Part shown: positions 3,086 through 23,550 of the stretch, piece by piece | Layout of the letters: each line of letters starts with the position of its first letter | Position numbering within the stretch: the stretch's first letter is position 1 | Sequence record: NC_074632.1 | Length of the DNA stretch: 23,666 nucleotides | Reading direction: 5' to 3' (one strand) | Notes under the pieces: generated by a model | The model's database searches: none | What the model saw: the letters and a program-made list of their open reading frames with translations, nothing else | What the model was told of the DNA's origin: nothing | Program-made: the position numbers and the translations under genes

Positions 3086-3241
3086 TCATTCGTTTTCAGG
3101 CAGTTTGTTTACAAAATCTCTAATTAAATCGTTTATTGTGATATCATTGTCTATGCAATATTTTTTCAATTTTTTGTGTTGCTGTTTTGTTAATCTTATC
3201 GTTATCAATATCTTTTTTTCTTCTTGGTTTTCTGTTTCCAT
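3086..3241 (-). CDS. 51-aa RHH regulator, SvtR-like (below the ORF-track cutoff)
   Basis: Manual translation METENQEEKKILITIRLTKQQHKKLKKYCIDNDITINDLIRDFVNKLPENE; SD GGTGA upstream; KLKKYCIDNDITINDLI resembles the helices of SIRV1 SvtR. Confidence 0.8.
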   Translation of the reverse strand: METENQEEKKILITIRLTKQQHKKLKKYCIDNDITINDLIRDFVNKLPENE

Positions 3242-3365: not shown

Positions 3366-3659
3366 ATGGAGCATATGTTAAAAACAATTTCAAAACCCGT
3401 TTCAATACGGGTAAGTAAAACTCAATATCAGTTTTTTTTAATGCGTAGACAAGAATTGAAAAGGAAATTACTAAAAAAGGTGATGGATATGGAAAATATA
3501 AAAATAGAAAATAAACCAGACCAAGATAAAGAGATTTACAGAGATACAATATCTTTCAGGTTACCTTATCAATATTACCAAAAGCTTGCTGAAATTGCTG
3601 AAGAAAATCAAGTTAAAGTAAGTGACATTATAAGAAATATTTTATTTGGAGGCGAGTAA
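3366..3659 (+). CDS. Tandem (double) RHH DNA-binding protein
   Basis: Two RHH-like units: PVSIRVSKTQYQFF and TISFRLPYQYYQKLAEIAEENQVKVSDIIRNIL. SD AGGAG favours ATG 3366 over the track start of 3315. Confidence 0.75.
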   Translation: MEHMLKTISKPVSIRVSKTQYQFFLMRRQELKRKLLKKVMDMENIKIENKPDQDKEIYRDTISFRLPYQYYQKLAEIAEENQVKVSDIIRNILFGGE

Positions 3660-4068: not shown

Positions 4069-4323
4069 ATGGTAGTTGATTTGAAGAGAATACAAAAAAT
4101 AATAGAAGATCAGTTTATTTCATACACGGCGCCAAGGATTGATATCATACTGTTTCCTACCGACGAGACTAGCGGTCTTTTTTATGCAGTTTATATCGTT
4201 GAATTTACGGATATTCAATATTTTACATCGCAGAAAATAGCAGAGGGCAAATATATGGTATTTCCAGAACAGAATGTTCTTATTATTAAGATCGGAGATT
4301 CTGCAAAAATTGTAAAGTTATAA
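4069..4323 (+). CDS. Hypothetical protein (84 aa)
   Basis: ATG ORF co-directional with the SSB gene and followed by a terminator. Confidence 0.7.
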   Translation: MVVDLKRIQKIIEDQFISYTAPRIDIILFPTDETSGLFYAVYIVEFTDIQYFTSQKIAEGKYMVFPEQNVLIIKIGDSAKIVKL

Positions 4324-4330
4324 TTTTTTA

Positions 4331-4374
4331 TTTTTTTATCAATAATTTTTCTCACGTTTGCCATAATATTACTA
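4331..4374 (+). terminator. 44-bp T-rich terminator module, copy 2
   Basis: 40/44 identical to 2500-2543. Confidence 0.6.
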
Positions 4375-4388
4375 TTTGCCTATTTAAC

Positions 4389-4414
4389 ACTACGTTCGGA
4401 GCTTCGCTCCTCAC
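4389..4414. repeat. Hairpin element copy 3
   Basis: ACTACGTTC-GGAGC-TTC-GCTCC-TCAC. Confidence 0.9.
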
Positions 4415-4426
4415 TCAATTTTCAAT

Positions 4427-4456
4427 ACAAATATTCCTTATATTATTTATATGTAT
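4427..4456. promoter_or_regulatory. 30-bp operator-like motif upstream of the ATPase gene
   Basis: ACAAATATTCCTTATATTATTTATATGTAT, about 25/30 to consensus. Confidence 0.55.
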
Positions 4457-4517
4457 ATTTTCATTCAATTTTACGTGAAAGAGAAGCTTAAAATATGTTG
4501 ACTCCAACGATTTACGT

Positions 4518-5828: not shown

Positions 5829-6457
5829 AAATGGTTTATGAGAATAAAATAAAAGAAAGCTTCAAGAAAATTTATCCAGAAGATACACTTTATCCGTCCG
5901 AAATTGGGCATTGCCTGCGAAAAACAATTTTGGCGAGAAGGATTGTCCATACAAAAAATCTTTCAAATGATTTCATGGATCTTGGCGTAATTATTCATGC
6001 TGACATTGAAAATTACCTAACGCAACAATTAGGTTGCGATGCAGAGAAAGCAATTGAATATCAAATAGAAGGTGTAAAAATATCTGCAAGAATAGATTTA
6101 CTTTGTCATGGCGACCTACTTGAATTGAAAACAGTTTCGCATTTTATTCGTCAACCTTATCAAAATCATATTGTTCAAGTATCTCTTTATTTACATATTT
6201 TATCACAGTTAGGATATAATGTTAATAATGTTTACATTATTTACGTAAATAGACAAAATTATGATGTACAAGAGTTTAAAATTCAAAAAGAACAACTAGA
6301 TGCTGGTTTAAAGCAAGCAATTAAATTTATAGAAGATTATAAGAAATACAAAAATGAGCAAAATATATTTAAAATTCCATTTGCGGATTTAGTTTTTTGC
6401 AAAACTTGCGAATTTAATAATATTTGCTATGGATCGATAACTAATTTTTTAAAATGA
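5825..6457 (+). CDS. Cas4-like (RecB-family, 4Fe-4S) nuclease (SIRV2 gp19-like)
   Basis: N-terminal YPSEIGHCLRK, RIDLL...LLELKT, QVSLY, C-terminal CKTCEFNNIC (1+3 Cys). Start is TTG 5825 or ATG 5831. Confidence 0.9.
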   Translation: MKMVYENKIKESFKKIYPEDTLYPSEIGHCLRKTILARRIVHTKNLSNDFMDLGVIIHADIENYLTQQLGCDAEKAIEYQIEGVKISARIDLLCHGDLLELKTVSHFIRQPYQNHIVQVSLYLHILSQLGYNVNNVYIIYVNRQNYDVQEFKIQKEQLDAGLKQAIKFIEDYKKYKNEQNIFKIPFADLVFCKTCEFNNICYGSITNFLK

Positions 6458-6549
6458 TTCGCCTTATCTGTGTTATTTTTATTGTATGACTCTCTGGTTC
6501 ACTCCGGGGGTTATATACTTTTAAATTATATATTATTAAGAATTATAAT

Positions 6550-6879
6550 ATGGAGAATAAATTCGCTGATTGGAATAAATATAGAAGGCAAGTTAATCAA
6601 GTTATTTTGGAATATTTCAACGAAACTGGTGTGCCGTTAGCGTTGAGATCTTTATATTTTTCATTTGGGCAAAAAATATTGTCAATTGTAAAAAGACAAA
6701 AAGATAAAAATATTATAGATAAATTAGTTGAGGCAAATATTTGCTATTTTTCAAAAGGTTTTGACGCAAATGAAAGAGTATTAAGAGATATTGTAAAAAT
6801 TATATTTTTAATGAAAATTGAGAATAAAAAACCAGATGAAGTTTTGAAAGAGATTTTTACGGATAAAGCTAACCACTAA
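6550..6879 (+). CDS. Probable truncated paralogue of the major capsid protein
   Basis: 16/59 ungapped identities to MCP residues 67-125 of this genome. Confidence 0.7.
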   Translation: MENKFADWNKYRRQVNQVILEYFNETGVPLALRSLYFSFGQKILSIVKRQKDKNIIDKLVEANICYFSKGFDANERVLRDIVKIIFLMKIENKKPDEVLKEIFTDKANH

Positions 6880-6980
6880 TATACCTTATATTAATAATAT
6901 GAATATTGTGTAATTTTGATGTTTTGTTGTAAACATGCATATACATAATATTAGGTATATGCAATTTTCGTATTCAATTT
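6875..6980 (+). promoter_or_regulatory. 106-bp late regulatory module upstream of MCP
   Basis: 30-mer 6875-6904, near-perfect palindrome GCATATACATAATATTAGGTATATGC 6937-6962, CGTATTCAATTT 6969-6980; colinear with 13211-13316. Confidence 0.75.
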
Positions 6981-7017
6981 TTATAAGCTTTTAAAAATAA
7001 TAATAAATTGACGAGAA

Positions 7018-7422
7018 ATGGCGAAAGGTCATACACCAAGGAGTTATTCCCAAAGGTATGCAAAATGGTCAGGGAAATTCACTGCATTTTCAAATCCAAC
7101 GGTAGCATCAACTATACTAACTAACGTTGATGAAGTTGCAAAAGAAAATTTCCAAACTAATGTGCCAAAATTTGCATCAGTTAATGATCAAGTTAGCGCA
7201 GTACTCACTCAGTATGGCGTAACTGGACCTAGCAGAGCGATATATCAAGGCTTCGGGTTAAAAATTGCTAGAGCCTTAAACAGAATTGGATCTGGACCTG
7301 CGTTAACCAATATGATTGCCGGTCTAAAAGCTTATTACATTTCAGCATTCAATGCAAATCCTACAATTTTAGACGCTGTAACTAATATAATTACTGGAAG
7401 TCCTAACGGGTACGTTAGCTAA
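7018..7422 (+). CDS. Rudivirus major capsid protein (SIRV P134 / gp26)
   Basis: MAKGHTPRSYSQRYAKW...RAIYQGFGLKIARALNRIGSGPAL...SAFNANP...GYVS is nearly identical to the recalled SIRV2 MCP. Confidence 0.97.
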   Translation: MAKGHTPRSYSQRYAKWSGKFTAFSNPTVASTILTNVDEVAKENFQTNVPKFASVNDQVSAVLTQYGVTGPSRAIYQGFGLKIARALNRIGSGPALTNMIAGLKAYYISAFNANPTILDAVTNIITGSPNGYVS

Positions 7423-7526
7423 CCTTAAAAGCTAATATATTGTTTTTTTATTTTTCTATTTTGCGTTTTAGTCCAATCTATATCTGAAAATTTTGTTTTA
7501 AAAATGTAAACATGAATAACTAAACC

Positions 7527-7751
7527 ATGATTGAAGAATATTTAAGACAAAAGGGCTTTGAGCCCCATTATATTTCAATTTTGAAAGAATTTCTGATTGA
7601 AATAAAAGAAGCATTAGATGAGAACGTTAGTAATTACGATTTAGACGAAATTATAAATTCTATCATCGAATATTTTGCAATAACATATAAATTACAAAAA
7701 ACAGATCTTTACCAACTTGTGAACGATGCGATACAAGACGGTGTTGTATGA
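7527..7751 (+). CDS. Acidic 74-aa protein, possible second truncated MCP-fold paralogue
   Basis: 15/68 ungapped identities to MCP 59-126 with conserved hydrophobic pattern. Confidence 0.6.
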   Translation: MIEEYLRQKGFEPHYISILKEFLIEIKEALDENVSNYDLDEIINSIIEYFAITYKLQKTDLYQLVNDAIQDGVV

Positions 7752-8771
7752 ATGGCAAAAACGCTTATCTTAACTATGGGCTATGCGTCTGTTAAGAATG
7801 TCGCTGAAGACATCGCAACAGTCGTGGGCAATGCAACTGTTGATGTTGAGCCTGCGTTGTATTTACAAAATATAAATAAATTTGATAAACTTATTGTTTT
7901 TGTTCCGTTTGTCCCCTCACTTTTAAACAATTATCTGTTGGTTTATAATAATTTTCAAGGCGAGAAATATTTCTACACAACCGCAGACGGCGTACCGTTG
8001 TTGAATGGCGTAAATGAATATATTGCAAGAAATATAAAATATATACCAAATTCTCAGTTTTCTGCAGAAAATCTAAAATCTGCCAATCTTGATGTGGATA
8101 TTCCAGTTTTTCATGGCGTAAACTTCGACATAGTGAAGAAGGCAGAAGAATTAGTTCCAAAAATGAGAGAAAAACTTGACCATGATTTTCCAGATAGTGT
8201 GAAAATCGGTATTGTTTCAGGTATGACGAGACGCAAAAACATCGATTTGTTTGTCGAAACAACCAGATTTCTGAACGAAAAAATGTCAGATATTGCGAAA
8301 AATATACATTTCTTTGTAATTTCGCATAAAGATTTTCAGAAATTGGACGTACCACAAAACGTTCATTTTGTTGCGCAATTTGGATATCAAAGTAGAGAAA
8401 AAGTATTTGCGTTTTACGGTGCGATGGACTATGTATTTGTTCCATCGGGATGTGAAGGATTTGGATTGCCAGTTCTAGAGGCGATGGCGATGGGCACTCC
8501 TGTAATTCACATGGCTATACCGCCATTCACTGAATTTACATCGTGGCAGTGGAATTTTCTGTTTAAAGATGAGGATGTGGAAAGATATTACGATAAGGAC
8601 CATGGTCAAACATGGAAAATCCATCGATTCACACCGGAAACTGGCGCACTAGCGATTTCGACGGCAGTGATGTCGGTTGATAGGGAGGAAAGAAGCAGGA
8701 GACTGAGAGATTTAGCTAAAAAATATGATATTAGGTTTTTATACAAGAGATTTTTAGAGAGTTTCGAATAG
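7752..8771 (+). CDS. GT-B (GT4-like) glycosyltransferase
   Basis: PSGCEGFGLPVLEAMAMGTPVI (Ex7E motif). Confidence 0.92.
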   Translation: MAKTLILTMGYASVKNVAEDIATVVGNATVDVEPALYLQNINKFDKLIVFVPFVPSLLNNYLLVYNNFQGEKYFYTTADGVPLLNGVNEYIARNIKYIPNSQFSAENLKSANLDVDIPVFHGVNFDIVKKAEELVPKMREKLDHDFPDSVKIGIVSGMTRRKNIDLFVETTRFLNEKMSDIAKNIHFFVISHKDFQKLDVPQNVHFVAQFGYQSREKVFAFYGAMDYVFVPSGCEGFGLPVLEAMAMGTPVIHMAIPPFTEFTSWQWNFLFKDEDVERYYDKDHGQTWKIHRFTPETGALAISTAVMSVDREERSRRLRDLAKKYDIRFLYKRFLESFE

Positions 8772-9698
8772 GGCATAGACCGTGCATGGACCTGTCGCCC
8801 ATGCGTAAATGTTAGATGGATTGTTAACTGAAAATTCCAAACTATCATTTGGCAAAATTGGAAAATTATTGTAAAGTTTGTTTCCAATATATACAATATA
8901 ATTAGAAAGATTTTGTAATATGATTTTTACAGTTTCTAGCGATGGACCTGAATAAATTGGTGACGGTGTTGTTGAAATTTGCAGTTGAAGACCTTGTATT
9001 GCAGGTGGGCTCATGTACATTGTCAATTTATTGATTGCGCTTGACAGTGAGTTCATGGATAAATAAATATACGCAAGTGCGTAAAGTAGGGCGTCAGTAA
9101 TCGTATAGATTGCCCCAGATAGCCCTGCCGATATCTGATTTGTTAATCTTGCAGTGACTAAATACACATTATTGTAAATATTTTGCAAAATTTCTGGCAC
9201 ATACAAAGTTGGCGATATTGCGGTTTTTATCTGATTGTCAACGCCAATTATAACCTGGTAAAGATTCTGGTAAACATTGTTTATTTCGCTTTGTAATGCA
9301 TTTTGTGTTTGTGTAACTGTTCCTGCGGTCAATTTGGCAATTGCGTTATAGACGTCAGATGGCATTTGAACAACTGCATTATACAATTGTGTTTGGCTGT
9401 TTACAATTGCTTGAATTTGTTGCGAAGCAGTTGCAATAAATCCTGCAATATAGATAGGATCTTGCTCTGTTATAACGGGCTGACCTGATACGTAAACTTC
9501 ATTGTAAAAATCTCCAACTTGTGCAGTAATATTGTTTGGAACGTAAAGATTACCGTTTTGAAATAATTGCCTGTCAATAAGTGTCCCAGCAAAATATATC
9601 TGGTTCAGTTTCAAAATTGCGGTATTCCACATCGCCGATGTCAATCTCTGAAACGGCTGTACGAATAAATCTGCAAAATTGGTATATTGAATACTCAT
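8754..9698 (-). CDS. Conserved rudiviral protein (SIRV ORF309-like), probably structural
   Basis: 314 aa, Q/N-rich helical middle, beta-rich C-terminus, N-terminal LTSAMWNTAILKL motif shared with fibre-like proteins. Confidence 0.65.
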   Translation of the reverse strand: MSIQYTNFADLFVQPFQRLTSAMWNTAILKLNQIYFAGTLIDRQLFQNGNLYVPNNITAQVGDFYNEVYVSGQPVITEQDPIYIAGFIATASQQIQAIVNSQTQLYNAVVQMPSDVYNAIAKLTAGTVTQTQNALQSEINNVYQNLYQVIIGVDNQIKTAISPTLYVPEILQNIYNNVYLVTARLTNQISAGLSGAIYTITDALLYALAYIYLSMNSLSSAINKLTMYMSPPAIQGLQLQISTTPSPIYSGPSLETVKIILQNLSNYIVYIGNKLYNNFPILPNDSLEFSVNNPSNIYAWATGPCTVYALFETL

Positions 9699-9736
9699 AA
9701 TTAAAAATGTTGTGTAATAGACTTATAAATGTCATC

Positions 9737-9786
9737 GTGATGCGCAAAGCGCAGAACGTAGTGAGGTGCGTAGCACCGAACGTAGT
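9737..9786. repeat. Hairpin element copies 4 and 5 in tandem (reverse orientation, 24-bp period)
   Basis: Reverse complement reads ACTACGTTC-GGTGC-TAC-GCACC-TC|ACTACGTTC-TGCGC-TTT-GCGCA-TCAC. Confidence 0.9.
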
Positions 9787-9873
9787 GCTAGTTAGGTCTT
9801 TTAAATTTCAGTGGAAATATATTTATTATGGTGAGACATTACGAGTTTTGATAATATTTTTGGACCGGTCAGA

Positions 9874-10191
9874 TTGATAATCGATAAATTGAAAGAATTG
9901 GAAATGAGGGGTGAGGCTTACGGTTTTTCCCAATATTTGTCACAGGCAATAATTTTATTCAGGACGACAGACAATGGCGCAATATACCAAATATTCATTC
10001 CTAATTTTAGTTATTATTTTGAATTTCTTGTTGAAAAAGATCCAAAAACAAAAGCGCCTATGGTTTCAGATTATAGAATTATTTATCCTGCGCCTGTGAA
10101 GATTTCAGATAGTCAAATTATGAAAGAATTAATACAAGATTATCTTCAATTTCAAGCGATGCAGATGCAGGGTAGCGGTCAAAATGAGTGA
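9874..10191 (+). CDS. Hypothetical protein
   Basis: 105-aa ORF (TTG start, or the internal ATG of MRGEAY); stop overlaps the next start. Confidence 0.7.
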   Translation: MIIDKLKELEMRGEAYGFSQYLSQAIILFRTTDNGAIYQIFIPNFSYYFEFLVEKDPKTKAPMVSDYRIIYPAPVKISDSQIMKELIQDYLQFQAMQMQGSGQNE

Positions 10192-10432
10192 AGCCACTCT
10201 TGTTCTTACAACACTTTCTACAACTGTGACTGTGTTATTGTCAATTATTACACTTTACTATAAGATAAAAACAATGTTTCGCAATGCAGTAAAGGATATT
10301 GTAAAACAAGAATTAGACAATTTGGTCAAAGAGATTTCAAAAATAAAGCAAAAACAAGACAAACAAGAAAACGATATTGAATATCTAAAACAAGAAATTG
10401 AAGAAATAAAAAAGAAAGTTGAAAAATTATAG
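10184..10432 (+). CDS. Small membrane protein: N-terminal TM helix plus coiled coil
   Basis: Hydrophobic residues 5-26 followed by K/E/Q heptads. Confidence 0.75.
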   Translation: MSEATLVLTTLSTTVTVLLSIITLYYKIKTMFRNAVKDIVKQELDNLVKEISKIKQKQDKQENDIEYLKQEIEEIKKKVEKL

Positions 10433-10639
10433 TTGTCTGTTGCTTTTTTCTCTTAATTCTTTCAATATTTTTATTACTTCTTGTGCTTTTTTGTATAAAT
10501 CTGACTTTCTAATATTTTCATCATCTACGGTTGCAAGTTCCATAGCCAAGTTGTCAAGCGCAACAAACAATTTTGCTGAAAATTCTTTATCTTGTTTTAT
10601 CTTTGGTTTTATTTCTTCTATTGTTTCTTTTTCACTCAT
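10427..10639 (-). CDS. Hypothetical helical protein (70 aa)
   Basis: ATG start coupled to the GNAT stop, SD AGGTGA, K/E-rich composition. Confidence 0.7.
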   Translation of the reverse strand: MSEKETIEEIKPKIKQDKEFSAKLFVALDNLAMELATVDDENIRKSDLYKKAQEVIKILKELREKSNRQL

Positions 10640-11153
10640 CTTTTTTCACCTCGTTTTTCGTTTTTTTGTCTTTTTCGTTTACTTCGTTCGGCACTACGTG
10701 CCTCACATTTAAATATTTTACAAAAACTGGCGTATTTGTTCTAGGCGTGTCTCCGACATATTCAAATCCTGAATTTTTATATAATGCATTTGAATGATTT
10801 GGAAAACCTAAAGTCCACAGCACTTCAATTTCATATGATTTCAGTAAATCAGATAATTTTTCAAGAAATTCTACAAGGTAATCGCCTGGGGCAGTTTTCG
10901 TAACCCTTCTAATAAAATACGATCTGTCAATTGGAATTTTGAATTTTTCTGCAACAAATCTGAATGGAATTGAATCGTTGATCCACGCAATTGCAACGAT
11001 GTAATTATCGCATTGATATGTAAAATATTTCTGGATTTTTGACGCTCCACCGCCTTGCGTTATGCCTTGAGCATGATATTTTGCAATTAGCAATCGTGAT
11101 AATTCAATATCTTTCTTATCCTGAAGTTCAACTATTTTGCATTCTTCCGCCAT
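10632..11153 (-). CDS. GNAT-family acetyltransferase
   Basis: FIRRVTK...YLVEFLEKL...EVLWTLG...NHSNALYKNSGFEYVG matches GNAT motifs A and B. Confidence 0.7.
   Translation of the reverse strand: MAEECKIVELQDKKDIELSRLLIAKYHAQGITQGGGASKIQKYFTYQCDNYIVAIAWINDSIPFRFVAEKFKIPIDRSYFIRRVTKTAPGDYLVEFLEKLSDLLKSYEIEVLWTLGFPNHSNALYKNSGFEYVGDTPRTNTPVFVKYLNVRHVVPNEVNEKDKKTKNEVKKDE
10681..10706. repeat. Hairpin element copy 6 (inside the GNAT 3-prime end)
   Basis: ACTTCGTTC-GGCAC-TAC-GTGCC-TCAC. Confidence 0.9.
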
Positions 11154-11194
11154 TTTCAGTATAATTATTCATAATATAACTTATAAGAATATAC

Positions 11195-11392
11195 CTAATG
11201 GTGAAAGCAGTGTGCCCAAAGATCTACGGAAACGCCAGTTGAAACAATAAGGACAATTATTGCAAATATTTTCTCTCCAGTGCTAACATTAGAAAAAATC
11301 AAAATTATAGATAAAACAATAAGAAGTAGCAAACCATACAAATCATGCATTTTTCCATGAGAAAAATAATAAAACATATCGCAGTTAGACAT
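11195..11392 (-). CDS. Small two-TM membrane protein
   Basis: LYGLLLLIVLSIILIFS and KIFAIIVLIVSTGVSV hydrophobic segments; ATG 11392 overlaps the hjc stop (alternative ATG 11350). Confidence 0.6.
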   Translation of the reverse strand: MSNCDMFYYFSHGKMHDLYGLLLLIVLSIILIFSNVSTGEKIFAIIVLIVSTGVSVDLWAHCFHH

Positions 11393-11732
11393 ATACAATT
11401 ACCTCTTTGTTGTTTTGTACAATTTCAAATTTCCATTCTTTCACTTTTTTGAAATAAACCAATACTGCAGGTTTACAATTGCAAAAAGAAAACATATCGC
11501 AAAATCGAAATAGTTTATCAATTTGGAATTTATCAACTCTCTGTGAAAGTTTTGACGTTGATTTTACTTCAATTGGAAAAATTGTGCTGTTGCGTGTTGC
11601 GATGATGTCTGGCAGTGGCTGAGAACCACTCCCAGAAACTGGAATTCTTGCAACCTTATATCCTTCATTTTTTAGAAAATCTAATGCTCTATATTCGTAG
11701 TATTTTCCCGAATTGTGGATATTAAATCTCAT
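11385..11732 (-). CDS. hjc: Holliday junction resolvase (Hjc/Hjr family)
   Basis: GKYYE...EGYKVARIPVSGSG...PDIIA...IEVKS (E-x-PD-(E)xK). SD GGTGA favours ATG 11732 over the track start of 11744. Confidence 0.93.
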   Translation of the reverse strand: MRFNIHNSGKYYEYRALDFLKNEGYKVARIPVSGSGSQPLPDIIATRNSTIFPIEVKSTSKLSQRVDKFQIDKLFRFCDMFSFCNCKPAVLVYFKKVKEWKFEIVQNNKEVIVYV

Positions 11733-11740
11733 GGTTTTCA

Positions 11741-13156
11741 TCACCTGTTGCCAACATTTTTATAATTTTTGTAGTAAAATACTGGTTTGTAGTTTTGTAA
11801 ATATACCTTTTTCTGTTCAAATTTTCTCTGTGATTGTATTTTGCCGACACCTTGTAATTGTTCCCCAAGTTGTTGCGCAAATTGAAGATCTGCGTCAGAA
11901 AGACCGTATTGTTTCCAATTTGATTTCCAATATTGCAAAAATTGGTCATACGGCAATGTCCTGGGACCTGCAGTATAGGAAAAGTTGCCGGTATATGTAT
12001 ATCTTGCGATCTGCATTATTGCGTCCGCTACCATTTTTGCGTACCAAATGTTGCTATATTTCTTATTTACAATTTTTTGTATTCTATAATACAGTTCGTA
12101 GTTTGAAATATACGTCTCGGCATAGCCAGAATTTGAAATATTTGTTGAACCTGGACCTAATTCTTGCATATGTTGTTCAAATATTTGTGCAAAAACTGAA
12201 ATTATTGCTCTTTCCGTTGACAATATTGCCGTTAATTGAATATCGTTCAGATTTTGGTCCTGTGGAAAGTCAGGCATTAAAATATTGAAATCCAGAGGCG
12301 TGATATCTAAGATTATGCCAAGTGCTTGTGAGAAATTTTGAATTTTTATATTATCGCCCAGAAGTTGGTAATTATTCTCTTCGGCAGAGAACGATGACCT
12401 GTCGAACCATGAAACGTCTAATGCCACGCCATTATCAATTATGTTATTCAGTAATGGCAAAAATGCTAACAAATATTTCGCTAAGTCTGGCAAAGAATTG
12501 AAATATTGTTGTGGTGTTGTATTTTGTTGCTGGGCTACCTTTGTCAAGGCATCAGACACCCCAGTATTTTGCGCCAAAGAATAAAGATAATTGTCAGATG
12601 TTGGAATTTGTATTTTTCCAACACCAAGATTTTCAAACGTCGTAACAGATGTTGACGTTGGTGGATTTTGGAAATAGGATTTTAATTTTTCACATGCTTC
12701 ATTATTGAAAAATGTACCAAATGCGGGAAAATAAACTGATCCATCGTAATATGTCACGTCGAATACTGCAATTTCATACAATTTTGAACAATTTTTGACA
12801 TATTGATCATAAAGAGCAGTATAATTGTTTATAGCATCTAATGTTGAAGGCGGAGATAATGTTGCTAAATTGAAAGTAAATGATTGTGTTGTGTTTGGTA
12901 TGAAATTGTTGAGAACTGATGCAGAAAAATTGTTTATTGCATTCAGAAAGTTTAGCACAATTTGTGCAAAAGCAACACCATAATTTGTATTTACGTAAGG
13001 CGGAACAACAACATTTTCAAGAGAAGATGGCAAAGTACTTGCAGTTCCGGCATTTGCCATTGCCTTAAACGCAGGAAAAGCTTTTTGTTTAAAAATCTTA
13101 TTGTAGAGATGATATTTCATTTGTGCTATTGATCTACTACCTTTTTTCTTTGTCAT
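11741..13156 (-). CDS. Minor virion protein (SIRV2 P488 / gp39-like)
   Basis: 471 aa, basic N-terminus MTKKKGSRSIAQMKYHLYNK, repeated FDVTYYD / LDVSWFD / LDITPLD motifs; next to hjc as in rudiviruses. Confidence 0.7.
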   Translation of the reverse strand: MTKKKGSRSIAQMKYHLYNKIFKQKAFPAFKAMANAGTASTLPSSLENVVVPPYVNTNYGVAFAQIVLNFLNAINNFSASVLNNFIPNTTQSFTFNLATLSPPSTLDAINNYTALYDQYVKNCSKLYEIAVFDVTYYDGSVYFPAFGTFFNNEACEKLKSYFQNPPTSTSVTTFENLGVGKIQIPTSDNYLYSLAQNTGVSDALTKVAQQQNTTPQQYFNSLPDLAKYLLAFLPLLNNIIDNGVALDVSWFDRSSFSAEENNYQLLGDNIKIQNFSQALGIILDITPLDFNILMPDFPQDQNLNDIQLTAILSTERAIISVFAQIFEQHMQELGPGSTNISNSGYAETYISNYELYYRIQKIVNKKYSNIWYAKMVADAIMQIARYTYTGNFSYTAGPRTLPYDQFLQYWKSNWKQYGLSDADLQFAQQLGEQLQGVGKIQSQRKFEQKKVYLQNYKPVFYYKNYKNVGNR

Positions 13157-13210
13157 TCTTCATCTATGTATTATTTCTCTTATTGCCACTTTTATTGCTC
13201 AATTTTCAAC

Positions 13211-13316
13211 ACTCATATTCCTTATATTAATAATATGAATGTTGCCGATACTTTTACGTGGTTTAGAAACATTATTATACCTAATATTAGGTATAATGAT
13301 ATTGCGTATTGAATTT
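13211..13316 (+). promoter_or_regulatory. 106-bp regulatory module between divergent genes
   Basis: 30-mer 13211-13240, perfect 24-bp palindrome ATTATACCTAATATTAGGTATAAT 13274-13297, CGTATTGAATTT 13305-13316. Confidence 0.75.
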
Positions 13317-13354
13317 ATTTTAATGTAGATCAATAAAATAAATGATGATAAAAA

Positions 13355-13594
13355 ATGTCAGCCAATCCGTCTGGACCTCACGGAAAGAAAGTGTCCGCTA
13401 GGATCATTAGAGCAATATTTGTTGGATCGACAATTGGAATATTTGGCGGTTTTGGATTATATTTACTTGCAGATGCAATAAACACATTATCCCACACTGC
13501 AATCGTAAGTCCTACTGGATTTTTATTACTAGGTTTTGGCGGAAGTATAGCAGGAGTAGTAGGAACAGAATTATCGAAAGATCTTGATGAATAA
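13355..13594 (+). CDS. Small Gly-rich two-TM membrane protein
   Basis: AIFVGSTIGIFGGFGLYLLA and TGFLLLGFGGSIAGVVG with GxxxG motifs. Confidence 0.75.
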   Translation: MSANPSGPHGKKVSARIIRAIFVGSTIGIFGGFGLYLLADAINTLSHTAIVSPTGFLLLGFGGSIAGVVGTELSKDLDE

Positions 13595-13639
13595 ATTCAA
13601 GTCATGCTTTTTTAAATCTTTTTCTCGAATATAACGATC

Positions 13640-15421
13640 ATGAGTAGTTTACCTTATCCTCTGAAATTCAAATTGCCACTCCAGTATCTTTCTTATCAGG
13701 ATTGGAATAATTTCGTAAATGATTTAAATACTGTTTATAATTCGCCAACTGGAGTTGCTTCTCAATATTACAGCAAAGGCAATTTGCAAAATTTAGATGA
13801 AGTTTTTGCAAAAACTCTCAATGTTGTGCAATTATACATAAATGGTTATGAAGCGCTATACAATTTGAAACAAGTACTTGCATATACTTTCGGAAATGCG
13901 TTCGCAGATTACAAACTTTACCCCCCGGTTAATTTTGCAAATATTGAGCAATTAACAAAATTACCAAGTTTTTATGTACAAAAATACAACATACCTACCG
14001 CAAAAATCCAACAAATTTCTCAGATATATAGTTTCATTTTTGAAAAAAATCTTCCATCTTTTACAAAAACAATACAAACGCTAATTCCAAAACTGACATA
14101 CAAATATTTACCTTCGGCAATTGCCGGTGGGATAACAACAATTTCAGGATCACAAACATTATCTCAAATTCTGCAAAACGAATTTGCAATTTCAAATTTT
14201 TCAACGTGGAAAGGGATAACAATTGAAAATCTAAGCAATAATAATGTTATTATTAATAATTCAGTTGTATTAATGCCAAAAAACTGTTTAAAGCTTAGTG
14301 CGTCCTCACCGTCAGAAGTTACAATTTCTGCTCAACAGCCTGCAGTAATTTCAACATTGTTAGAATTTGGAGGGATACCCGTGACCGCTTACGCAATTAC
14401 GATAACGAATAGCCAGTCTGATCCTACACCTTCCAATTTCCAACAATTATTGTCGCTTAATCTGTCAGGAATAATTTCATCATCATCACAATTACTCAAT
14501 TTAAAATTCTGCCAAGATATAAATTGCAATACACAATTATACGCATGGATTGAATATTATACCAGTGATTTGTCGACAGTATATGTTTGGGTATTGCTAC
14601 CTGGGGGTGTATCTGCAAATTCTTCAATTACGATATATATGCAAGTGGCAAATACAAATCAGTATCCTTACACTGGGATAAATTCATATTATAATACGTC
14701 ATACGATAACGGTGCGAATGTGTTTGACGCTTACATGAATTTTATGGGAACTTCACCGATACCTTCAAATTATAGCAAGTATACGAATCTTTCTACTCAT
14801 CCACAATTTGTCGCAGAAAGTGGAACAACTCCAGGATATCTTTTTACGTTTGACAATGAAGGCAGTAGTTATGATAACGTTTATATATCTGCACCAAATT
14901 CTGCTAGGACACCCGAAATATTTGAAGGTATGGCATATTACAACGGCAGTGCAGACCAGCAAGGTATTATGTTTTTCGGGGAGGAATCGTCAGGATGGTG
15001 CAATAATACTAATGAAGGAAATGCATACTATCTCTGCAACAGTTGGACAGCCGATTGGGATCCGTATGATGGAGATGCGTATATCTGGCAAGGGTCAAAT
15101 CAAGAGAATTCGTATAGCGAAAGTCTCTTTACATCTTCTGGCTACAATTTTTATCAAGTTATTGCAACCAGTGGCGAAATAATTTTCAATGGCGCAACAC
15201 CAAATAGTCCAACTACACCATACGCACAACTTGACATCCAAAATGTTTTCACTTACAGCGGAACAATTACAGTTTATGGAGATGTAGTAAGTACAATTGA
15301 AGATTCTGGCGGTGCCGATCATACGGGCTATTGGTATTATCTTAGAGCAAGAGCCTATCCGCCTAGCGGTGTAATGCCTTCTAATTCAAACCCACAGAAA
15401 GTCACCATGTATGTTGCATAA
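13640..15421 (+). CDS. Minor virion protein (SIRV2 P564 / gp33-like) with C-terminal DUF2341-like domain
   Basis: YAITITNSQ...LKF...LYAWIE...VYVWV..P.....ITIYM pattern typical of DUF2341; beta-rich C-terminus. Confidence 0.7.
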   Translation: MSSLPYPLKFKLPLQYLSYQDWNNFVNDLNTVYNSPTGVASQYYSKGNLQNLDEVFAKTLNVVQLYINGYEALYNLKQVLAYTFGNAFADYKLYPPVNFANIEQLTKLPSFYVQKYNIPTAKIQQISQIYSFIFEKNLPSFTKTIQTLIPKLTYKYLPSAIAGGITTISGSQTLSQILQNEFAISNFSTWKGITIENLSNNNVIINNSVVLMPKNCLKLSASSPSEVTISAQQPAVISTLLEFGGIPVTAYAITITNSQSDPTPSNFQQLLSLNLSGIISSSSQLLNLKFCQDINCNTQLYAWIEYYTSDLSTVYVWVLLPGGVSANSSITIYMQVANTNQYPYTGINSYYNTSYDNGANVFDAYMNFMGTSPIPSNYSKYTNLSTHPQFVAESGTTPGYLFTFDNEGSSYDNVYISAPNSARTPEIFEGMAYYNGSADQQGIMFFGEESSGWCNNTNEGNAYYLCNSWTADWDPYDGDAYIWQGSNQENSYSESLFTSSGYNFYQVIATSGEIIFNGATPNSPTTPYAQLDIQNVFTYSGTITVYGDVVSTIEDSGGADHTGYWYYLRARAYPPSGVMPSNSNPQKVTMYVA

Positions 15422-15427
15422 TGCAAT

Positions 15428-15457
15428 ATTCATATTATATATATAAGGTATATGAGT
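15428..15457. promoter_or_regulatory. 30-bp operator-like motif (reverse orientation) upstream of the largest structural gene
   Basis: ATTCATATTATATATATAAGGTATATGAGT, 27/30 to 20085-20114. Confidence 0.7.
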
Positions 15458-20078: not shown

Positions 20079-20084
20079 TTAAGT

Positions 20085-20180
20085 ATTCATATTATTAATA
20101 TTAGGTATATGAGTACTGGATATTTTTCGCTCAGAATCAAAAAATTTGTCTGCAACATTCCTATATATTATATAAGGAAT
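20085..20180. promoter_or_regulatory. Paired operator-like motifs upstream of the methyltransferase-GT operon
   Basis: ATTCATATTATTAATATTAGGTATATGAGT 20085-20114 and near-palindrome ATTCCTATATATTATATAAGGAAT 20157-20180. Confidence 0.65.
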
Positions 20181-20241
20181 ATTAGCATTCAGAATTGTTA
20201 ATGAATTTGCTTTTTAAAATGTTTACACAAAGAATATCATT

Positions 20242-23191: not shown

Positions 23192-23325
23192 GTGAAAATC
23201 TAAAAATGACTACATTTTTATAACTTGATGAAAATAGATGTATGATTATGTACTGTTAGTTCAAATTTTAAAATCATAGAAATAATATGGCAAACTTGAA
23301 AAAAATAGCAGACAAAAAAAGAAAA

Positions 23326-23550
23326 TTAATCAATAACCTGATCTAAAATTGCCCCAAGATATGGTGGCAAAAACAAATGTGATACGCCGTCCAAACATTG
23401 ATGACAAGTATCAACATCAGCAATAATAATTATTGGCAAAACCCCTGGATATTTCTTAGCAAATCTCATAGCCTTTTCCGCAACGCTTGCGCTTTGATGC
23501 TTTAGCCATTCTTTATATTCTTTTTCATTTGCGAATCTCAAAATTTCCAT
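23326..23550 (-). CDS. Hypothetical protein (74 aa, CxxC)
   Basis: ATG with SD GGAG; contains CHQC. Confidence 0.65.
   Translation of the reverse strand: MEILRFANEKEYKEWLKHQSASVAEKAMRFAKKYPGVLPIIIIADVDTCHQCLDGVSHLFLPPYLGAILDQVID

Follow-up and report, generated by a model that had tools for sequence, protein, structure and literature searches.

Paired pseudo-palindromic sites at a constrained spacing upstream of core and structural gene promoters in Acidianus rod-shaped virus 3

Control of transcription in archaeal viruses is known from a handful of regulators, SvtR, AvtR, F55, and Sta1 among them, none of which explains how rudiviruses coordinate their core and structural genes. SvtR, a rudiviral ribbon-helix-helix (RHH) protein of SIRV1, occupies a site well upstream of a structural gene's TATA box, from which it spreads along the DNA (PMC5569661). 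AvtR of the lipothrixvirus AFV6 is a virus-encoded tandem RHH protein with about eight genomic sites; it acts from upstream through imperfect inverted repeats at homologous genes within the genus, protects long stretches of DNA, and serves as both activator and repressor (PMC5569661). F55 of the fusellovirus SSV1 is a viral RHH protein with repeated sites at several promoters, one or two at each (PMC5569661). Sta1 is a host Lrs14-type winged helix-turn-helix protein that, according to the available text of Kessler 2006 (PMC1635249), protects the core promoter of SIRV1 ORF134, which encodes the major capsid protein (MCP), together with a region "about 30 nt upstream." The 23,666-base stretch of DNA analyzed here (record NC_074632.1; hereafter the window) corresponds to the entire genome of Acidianus rod-shaped virus 3 (ARV3, MN876842.1; 100% match over the query), a member of the genus Hoswirudivirus (Rudiviridae) whose host is Acidianus brierleyi. 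Within it, two look-alike stretches of 106 bp each carry two copies of one pseudo-palindromic motif, 60 bp apart from start to start, next to a putative core promoter.

One of these stretches lies in the promoter of gp14, the MCP gene, and the other in the intergenic region between the divergent genes gp24 and gp25. An earlier note on this DNA had called them colinear, and the alignment of 6875-6980 with 13211-13316 was indeed gap-free, with 76/106 positions identical. By segment, identity was 31/35 in the first site (35-mer A), 10/25 in the 25-nt spacer, 25/35 in the second site (35-mer B), and 11/12 in the terminal CGTATT(C/G)AATTT; the 30-mer singled out by the note, which is part of site A, matched at 28 of 30 positions between the loci. 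The second site began 60 bp after the first at both (6875 to 6935 and 13211 to 13271). The further claim that the spacers had diverged while keeping their length was also borne out, since the resemblance between the two did not exceed that of random intergenic 25-mers (P = 0.25). The elements of the two regions are:

6875-6909, plus strand: distal site A of the MCP promoter (contains the 30-mer), an ARV3-specific extra copy that overlaps the gp13 stop codon; 31 bits.
6935-6969, plus strand: proximal site B of the MCP promoter, a near-perfect palindrome and the ancestral site, which aligns with the palindrome of SIRV1/2/9.
6969-6987, plus strand: putative gp14 core promoter, comprising a B recognition element (BRE) and a TATA box (TTTTTATAAG at 6978-6987), from sequence and position; conserved in all four hoswirudiviruses.
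13189-13198, minus strand: putative TATA box, predicted from sequence, for gp24 (P488-like), whose promoter points the other way; it lies 32 bp away from the site A centre, and the block TTTTATTGCTCAAT is conserved in all four relatives.
13211-13245, plus strand: site A of the gp24/gp25 intergenic region, nearest the gp24 promoter; 33.6 bits.
13271-13305, plus strand: site B upstream of gp25, a 22-bp perfect palindrome in the ancestral position.
13305-13323, plus strand: putative gp25 core promoter, BRE and TATA box (TTTATTTTAA at 13314-13323), conserved through to the ATG in all four relatives.

The 30-mer and the palindrome had been taken for distinct elements. They proved to be versions of one motif, as judged by site comparison, by the motif profile, and by a repeat finder that put both in a single repeat family (D2) with more copies on both strands. 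Likewise, CGTATT(C/G)AATTT, formerly regarded as a third box of the module, corresponds to the first 12 bases of the core promoter, i.e., the BRE together with the opening bases of the TATA box. The motif is a pseudo-palindrome of ~38 bp; its information profile, drawn from 41 sites in seven rudiviruses, is dyad-symmetric, with three invariant ATAT boxes at 9-bp steps, an invariant C and G, and symmetric outer arms (CAA...TTG). The 13-base core ATATWCCTWATAT, with at most one mismatch, matched ARV3 13 times against 0.53 expected, a count reached in 0/100 shuffles. A weight matrix built from the motif copies themselves gave exactly 11 sites in ARV3 at 21-36 bits and none between 5 and 21 bits, and 11/11 lay between genes or at operon boundaries. 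The B-type copies form near-perfect palindromes of 22-24 bp, a dyad symmetry that fits a dimeric or multimeric binder, and A-type copies are poor palindromes. The string TTTTACGYG in the spacers was not significantly enriched (2 matches vs. 0.47 expected). Metagenome contigs aligned to 6300-12299 came from diverse relatives; one that spanned site A had 1-nt indels that offset each other (6892, 6896, and 6912), and nothing decisive emerged from them. The two loci are not the only ones, and further copies occur in the genome:

839-873 and 935-969, plus strand: two sites 96 bp apart, inside the annotated open reading frame (ORF) gp01 and upstream of an early-type promoter (motif comparison and matrix scan).
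4427-4461, plus strand: single site upstream of gp11 (ATPase) and gp12 (Cas4-like), found with the matrix, with orthologous sites in ARV2, MRV1, and SSRV1.
11161-11195, plus strand: weaker site (21 bits), 8 nt upstream of minus-strand gene gp21's start codon, kept in ARV2 and SSRV1.
15423-15457, minus strand: single site upstream of gp27 (tail-fibre protein), from the matrix, motif comparison, and relatives.
20080-20114 and 20152-20186, minus strand: paired sites 72 bp apart upstream of gp29 (methyltransferase), from motif comparison and the matrix.

The motif therefore precedes the ATPase/Cas4, MCP-glycosyltransferase, P488-like, gp25-gp26, tail-fibre, and methyltransferase operons, a distribution at odds with the proposal that the module specifically couples MCP with the 79-aa product of gp25. 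The site at 11161-11195 stands within a string of minus-strand genes before gp21 (acetyltransferase), where, unlike the other sites, it would overlap a core promoter or fall inside an operon. The annotated start of gp01 (839-1012) is an ATG inside one palindrome site, and this ORF also holds the second site and a copy of a hairpin described below; its sole relative was a weak match near the other end of ARV2, and gp01 may not be a gene.

The relatives of ARV3 retain the motif. ARV2, MRV1, and SSRV1, which were 75-77% identical to ARV3 over a 7.5-kb query (6500-14000), had one copy at each orthologous promoter (ATPase, MCP, gp24/gp25, tail-fibre, methyltransferase) against a null of 0.01 matches per genome, and each single copy preceded the TATA box by ~33 bp. 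The distance between site start and ATG was 83 bp at MCP in ARV2 and MRV1, and 84 bp at gp25 in ARV2, MRV1, and SSRV1, in each case that of the proximal copy in ARV3. Since the site-to-ATG distances of the proximal copies equal those of the relatives' single sites, the ARV3 proximal palindromes are ancestral and the 30-mers extra, ARV3-specific copies. Between gp24 and gp25 these relatives have one site, placed centrally between divergent TATA-like boxes that lie 32 and 33 bp off; in ARV3 both of the divergent promoters are provided with a copy of their own at the same distance. Elsewhere, the motif was counted 7 times in SIRV2 and 7 times in SIRV1 (null 0.18 each), 3-4 times in SRV, 5-9 times in SIRV9 depending on the threshold, and 4 times, in weaker form, in SBRV1. 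In an alignment of MCP promoters from three genera (Hoswi-, Ice-, and Usarudivirus), the palindrome, the TATA box, and the leader stood out as conserved islands, with an invariant ATAT..C..ATAT..TATA.G beside the conserved TATA box. The gp14 core promoter aligns with that of SIRV, which is the oligonucleotide Reg2 in the available text of Kessler 2006 (PMC1635249).

The strict consensus was found in no archaeal genome (185,579 species searched), its 6 matches all being bacterial and near chance level. Since it was absent from all of the archaeal genomes searched, the motif belongs to the viruses and not to a host regulon. A search of full-text literature with motif strings returned no relevant paper, although figures and subscription papers lay outside that search and novelty is thus unproven. 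A concerted change was also seen, with most ARV3 sites reading ..ATATWCCT.. versus ..ATATTCAT.. or ..ATATACAT.. in ARV2, MRV1, SSRV1, and the SIRVs; the CCT form occurs in one further lineage (contigs L153/L213). This CAT-to-CCT change across most ARV3 sites suggests that the specificity of a binder may have shifted along with its sites.

The spacing of paired sites recurs beyond ARV3. IMG/VR and JGI metagenome contigs were searched with a gapped two-site pattern allowing 45-75 bp. Where the DNA also codes for rudiviral proteins, the only spacings within that range were 58, 60, and 72 bp; unrelated AT-rich DNA gave ~340 matches over all spacings, with 12.5% at 58/60/72. Paired sites were present in ARV3 (MCP, gp24/gp25, methyltransferase, and left end), in SIRV1/2/3/9, and in contigs L074, L153, L178, and L213. 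A spacing of 60 bp was seen at the usarudivirus MCP promoter (SIRV4, 5, 9, 11, and several contigs), where the two spacer types differ by substitution at many positions and lack indels, in the L153/L213 lineage upstream of a gp18-like gene, and, in L074, at both steps of a triple array that precedes the MCP gene; in all, it recurred in five contexts with unrelated or diverged spacers. The array in L074 (1-245) has three sites at 60-bp steps (centres 61, 121, and 181; start codon at 241) ahead of an MCP that is 89% identical to that of ARV3. Other spacings were 72 bp (ARV3 methyltransferase, L178), 84 bp (L153/L213), and 96 bp (ARV3 left end, L153/L213). Excluding the two original loci, 3/6 independent pairs were exactly 60 bp apart (~7e-4 under a uniform window of 31 values). 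Further rudivirus lineages and further promoters show the 60-bp arrangement too, so the spacing is constrained.

Outside the Icelandic viruses nearly all spacings equal 60+12k (60, 72, 84, 96), the one exception being in L153/L213, where the sites belonging to two divergent promoters are 129 bp apart. The series steps by 12 bp, not 10.5, and does not fit B-DNA phasing. Twelve bp is also the length of DNA per MCP dimer in SIRV2 (PMC5517147), yet SIRV1/2/3 themselves break the 60+12k rule. Tandem promoters, in which 60 bp would be the distance from site to transcription start, were considered and rejected, as they fail for SIRV9, where the site is 9 bp nearer the TATA box. The two-operator architecture proposed by the earlier note thus survives in part: there are two dyad-symmetric sites per promoter at a constrained spacing that recurs across lineages, but they are one motif used twice, not two different operators plus a box. 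An architecture of paired sites under spacing constraint is supported by this comparison of sequences.

With regard to the origin of the second copies, no sign of a duplicated 106-bp module was found. Spacer identity was at background level, the two proximal B copies were only 22/30 identical and no closer than any two sites, and the distal A-type copies were 27-28/30 identical at four ARV3 loci, including the tail-fibre and methyltransferase sites; together these rule out a copied block. Upstream of MCP, the sequence to the left of the distal copy, which is the end of gp13, corresponds by orthology to what lies left of the single site in MRV1 and SSRV1; to the right of the proximal copy comes the core promoter, likewise orthologous. 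Because the MCP flanks match those of a single site and block copying is excluded, each locus gained its second copy in place. Compared with its relatives, ARV3 has 42-57 bp more intergenic DNA ahead of MCP, and the region separating gp24 from gp25 is 60-93 bp longer.

We consider it likely, at a probability of about 0.7, that the 106-bp stretches are promoter-upstream control regions with paired predicted sites for a multimeric, sequence-specific regulator of core and structural genes. Under this model, two ~38-bp pseudo-palindromic sites 60 bp apart would be followed by a BRE/TATA core promoter ~33 bp past the centre of the proximal site, and a dyad-symmetric, multimeric DNA-binding protein would dock at about -60 from the transcription start, where it would control recruitment of TBP and TFB. 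At some promoters occupancy would be strengthened or sharpened by a further site, spaced at a fixed 60 bp (or 60+12k). A position near -60 is typical of archaeal activators, though RHH regulators can repress from such sites by spreading. Our first guess for the binder is a virus-encoded RHH protein (gp08, a tandem RHH, or the SvtR-like gp07) and our second a host factor of the Sta1/Lrs14 type. ARV3 encodes three RHH proteins; the two candidates named here are:

3366-3659, plus strand: gp08, candidate binder, predicted single-chain tandem ribbon-helix-helix (fold pLDDT 76.7; beta-alpha-alpha twice).
3086-3241, minus strand: gp07, candidate binder, SvtR-like RHH (best PDB match 2KEL, SvtR, E 0.14; phmmer to SIRV ORF56b 2e-5).

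Several observations weigh against regulation by a shared, multimeric binder at such sites. Sixty bp amounts to 5.7 turns of B-DNA (60/10.5), not a whole number, and therefore simple same-face cooperativity is not the explanation. The icerudiviruses SIRV1/2/3 use spacings of 58 and 114 bp, the distance from site to TATA box varies by genus (~33 bp in hoswirudiviruses vs. ~24 bp, i.e., 9 bp closer, in SIRV1/2/9), and ARV1 has only one weak site and SMRV1 none. The beta-strand residues of gp08 vary among lineages with the same motif, and the gp07/gp08 intergenic region holds no palindrome of at least 5 bits, which would be unusual for an autoregulated RHH binder. In addition, the promoter elements, transcription starts, and regulatory direction in ARV3 are themselves predictions; the starts are predicted ~10 nt upstream of the ATGs at 7018, 13355, and 13156.

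Among the candidates, gp08 had its best structural match in chain E of 9F0X (F-plasmid relaxosome; Z 8.7 over 88 residues), which we take to be TraY, a tandem RHH protein; single-chain Arc (Z 6.1) and AvtR (Z 3.9) came next. Its homologues occur in motif-bearing lineages, while ARV1 has no full-length homologue and SMRV1 none. This co-occurrence of gp08 and motif is only suggestive of a binder role, and the acetyltransferase gp21 shows the same phyletic pattern. SIRV1 and SIRV2 have an unannotated, gp08-homologous open frame of ~90 codons between the Rep and SSB genes (L005 9468-9740; L007 6048-6320), in which no ATG, GTG, or TTG start precedes the first beta-strand. For gp07, the SvtR consensus ATnnTTCAAnAnnnnnAAAATG had 5 matches in ARV3 at 2 mismatches versus 3 expected, none overlapping a palindrome site, and no match in SIRV1 at 1 mismatch; the sites thus do not fit the published SvtR operator, and the gp07 promoter has no palindrome. 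A further candidate, gp04, falls in the aCcr1/ORF59b clade (52-67% identity). The aCcr1 box is AGTATTA (PMC9976892), unlike the motif; by eye it was absent from the ARV3 sites, the nearest string being GTATT(C/G)A in the BRE. Viral TFB, which the earlier note had listed as a possible regulator, is excluded as the common binder on phyletic grounds, as its gene is confined to four hoswirudiviruses and the motif occurs also in SIRV1/2/9, SRV, and SBRV1, i.e., in genera without the gene. A search of prokaryote genomes with the TFB protein gave no match. As for Sta1, its consensus ATNT-N8-(A/T)NAT is very loose; by eye, the SIRV palindrome fits it and the ARV3 B copies are one base off.

The same sites could also serve to nucleate repression. 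A viral RHH protein of the SvtR or AvtR type would bind the palindromes as high-affinity sites and spread into the BRE and TATA box, keeping core and structural genes off early or shutting them late, and 60+12k pairs would let filaments merge in register. SvtR acts from ~80 nt upstream of the TATA box, and AvtR protects ~100 nt and is both activator and repressor (review PMC5569661). The complement of three RHH proteins in ARV3, the predicted likeness of gp08 to TraY, single-chain Arc, and AvtR, the 9-bp ATAT periodicity, which would suit several RHH modules, and the 12-bp steps in spacing all agree with this. The published SvtR consensus, however, mismatches both the palindrome and its positions, neither the gp07 nor the gp08 promoter has a palindrome, and the sites lie upstream of the BRE, a placement in archaea more typical of activators such as Ptr2 and TFB-RF1; we thus regard nucleated repression as possible but doubtful. 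It is rather unlikely that the virus instead places docking sites for a host regulator, of Lrs14/Sta1 type or other, and borrows host activation. This idea draws on the footprint of Sta1 on the SIRV1 MCP promoter, which in the available text is accompanied by stimulation in vitro (PMC1635249), and on the persistence of the motif across viruses whose own small regulators differ. Sta1 is now seen, however, as a low-specificity, AT-preferring chromatin protein (PMC11841832), and it stimulates promoter 56 too, which is without the palindrome. The absence of the strict motif from archaeal genomes speaks against a host regulon, and the concerted CAT-to-CCT change at nearly all ARV3 sites fits a dedicated, co-evolving binder.

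That the distal copies are functionless relics of local duplications, equally spaced through descent or chance, is a view to which we give little credence. The orthology of the A left flank and the B right flank to single-site flanks is what an in-place insertion or duplication of 60 bp would leave, and the 60-bp units of the L074 array resemble one another; yet the motif is best conserved in its distal copies (A-type, four loci), the spacers at the two loci are unrelated but of equal length, those of usarudiviruses have diverged without indels, and the same 60 bp is found at different promoters in different genera. It is scarcely credible that the palindromes form hairpins or cruciforms in replication intermediates, or phase or nucleate the capsid lattice at 12 bp per MCP dimer. 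The 24-bp core, the predominance of spacings in multiples of 12 bp (60, 72, 84, 96), the measured 12 bp per dimer in SIRV2 (PMC5517147), and the near-perfect symmetry of B-type copies (z -3.9 to -4.8) lend themselves to it. However, A-type copies are poor palindromes, SIRV1/2/3, where the 12-bp lattice was measured, use 58 and 114 bp, and packaging leaves the fixed TATA-adjacent position unexplained. The host grows at ~70 C or above, and hairpin energies of only -2.3 to -7.4 kcal/mol at 37 C are too weak for such a host, and a hairpin function was rejected on this ground. A hybrid of these ideas, that the palindromes are docking points of a protein lattice with a 12-bp repeat (a filament of a viral RHH master regulator or, more boldly, the capsid protein itself), spaced at 60+12k for assemblies to meet in register, strikes us as quite improbable. 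If true, a 12-bp lattice would constitute an enhancer-like switch with quantised spacing, and could tie late transcription in rudiviruses to the level of the regulator or capsid protein.

The genes flanking the two stretches are:

7018-7422, plus strand: gp14, major capsid protein (Pfam Sulf_coat_C, E 1.4e-74; annotation).
11741-13156, minus strand: gp24, an SIRV2 ORF488 homologue that is a structural protein according to the SRV and SMRV1 annotations.
13355-13594, plus strand: gp25, 79 aa, two predicted membrane helices (phrog_22428, function unknown).

The gene for gp26 (structural protein, 593 aa) begins 45 nt after gp25. The slot of gp25 is occupied in SSRV1 by gp21 (L004 11024-11320), a pyramid-forming protein of the P98 type, and the two genes have the same palindrome, core promoter, and a nearly identical leader. 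Comparison of gp25 with P98 revealed no similarity. Two-helix membrane proteins of the gp25 type occur also in ARV2, MRV1, and ARV1 (ORF77), and according to Baquero et al., ARV3, MRV1, ARV1, and ARV2 are without a P98 homologue and must use another release mechanism. Its place, shared with the SSRV1 pyramid protein and preceded by the same promoter and leader, makes gp25 a candidate on positional grounds for a role in egress in viruses without P98. A role of this kind had been suggested earlier for the 79-aa protein on the basis of co-regulation; the shared slot in SSRV1 adds support by an independent route.

ARV3 has two promoter classes: the palindrome-bearing promoters of core operons, and the early, anti-defence-type cassettes. 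The small genes of the left terminus have another repeated promoter cassette (repeat family D7) instead of the palindrome. This GATAGAAAGATTTAAATAG-type cassette occurs at 985-1034, 1501-1550, and 2113-2162, ~30 nt upstream of gp02, gp03, and gp05, and probably corresponds to the regulatory sequence of early/anti-defence type known from ARV2 and ARV3 (PMC11065993). A T-rich repeat block (TTTTTTAT..ACTATTTTTCTCA) was present at 1412-1463, 2036-2087, 2492-2543, and 4323-4374, with an inverted copy at 23276-23329; it lies directly 3' of the stop codons of gp02, gp04, gp05, and gp10, and is likely a shared terminator module. A dispersed GC-rich hairpin was seen at 906-932, 2853-2879, 4389-4415, 10681-10707, and, on the minus strand, 9760-9796. 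Its stem varies by compensatory pairs (GGAAC/GTTCC, GGAGC/GCTCC, GGCAC/GTGCC, GGTGC/GCACC), and two copies lie just upstream of palindrome sites (935 and 4427).

A single, strongly conserved site of 38 bp, present in most rudivirus genera at the majority of core promoters, provides a concrete handle on the missing regulator, and SIRV2, which is genetically editable, has the same site at its capsid promoter and a pair upstream of ORF564. Of the described systems, Sta1 acts on a promoter, that of SIRV1 ORF134, which is orthologous to the ARV3 MCP promoter. From the available text (PMC1635249), its upstream footprint would coincide with the SIRV palindrome, and it binds imperfect inverted repeats as a dimer and activates in vitro. 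Sta1 differs in its very loose consensus and in now being viewed as non-specific (PMC11841832), and the portion of its literature available to us does not describe the 38-bp motif, a regulon-wide distribution, or paired spacing. Ptr2 of Methanocaldococcus jannaschii offers a likeness in design, with two upstream sites for one dimeric regulator that activates by recruiting TBP (PMC1635249, available text), but it is a cellular protein of the Lrp family with another motif, closer site spacing, and no link by descent.

Among viral regulators, SvtR has in gp07 its nearest ARV3 relative, but besides its mismatched consensus, the SIRV2 ORF1070 promoter is without the palindrome, as is that of gp07. 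AvtR resembles the ARV3 system in its inverted repeats at homologous genes and in its tandem RHH architecture, which gp08 is predicted to share as a single chain; it differs in its motif (ATnnTnnTAnnACnTT), its structural match to gp08 is weak (Z 3.9), and nothing links gp08 to the palindrome. F55, finally, is alike in having repeated sites for one protein at several promoters, but its sites are direct repeats placed over the BRE and transcription start, the position of a repressor, whereas those of ARV3 are palindromic and lie upstream of the BRE.

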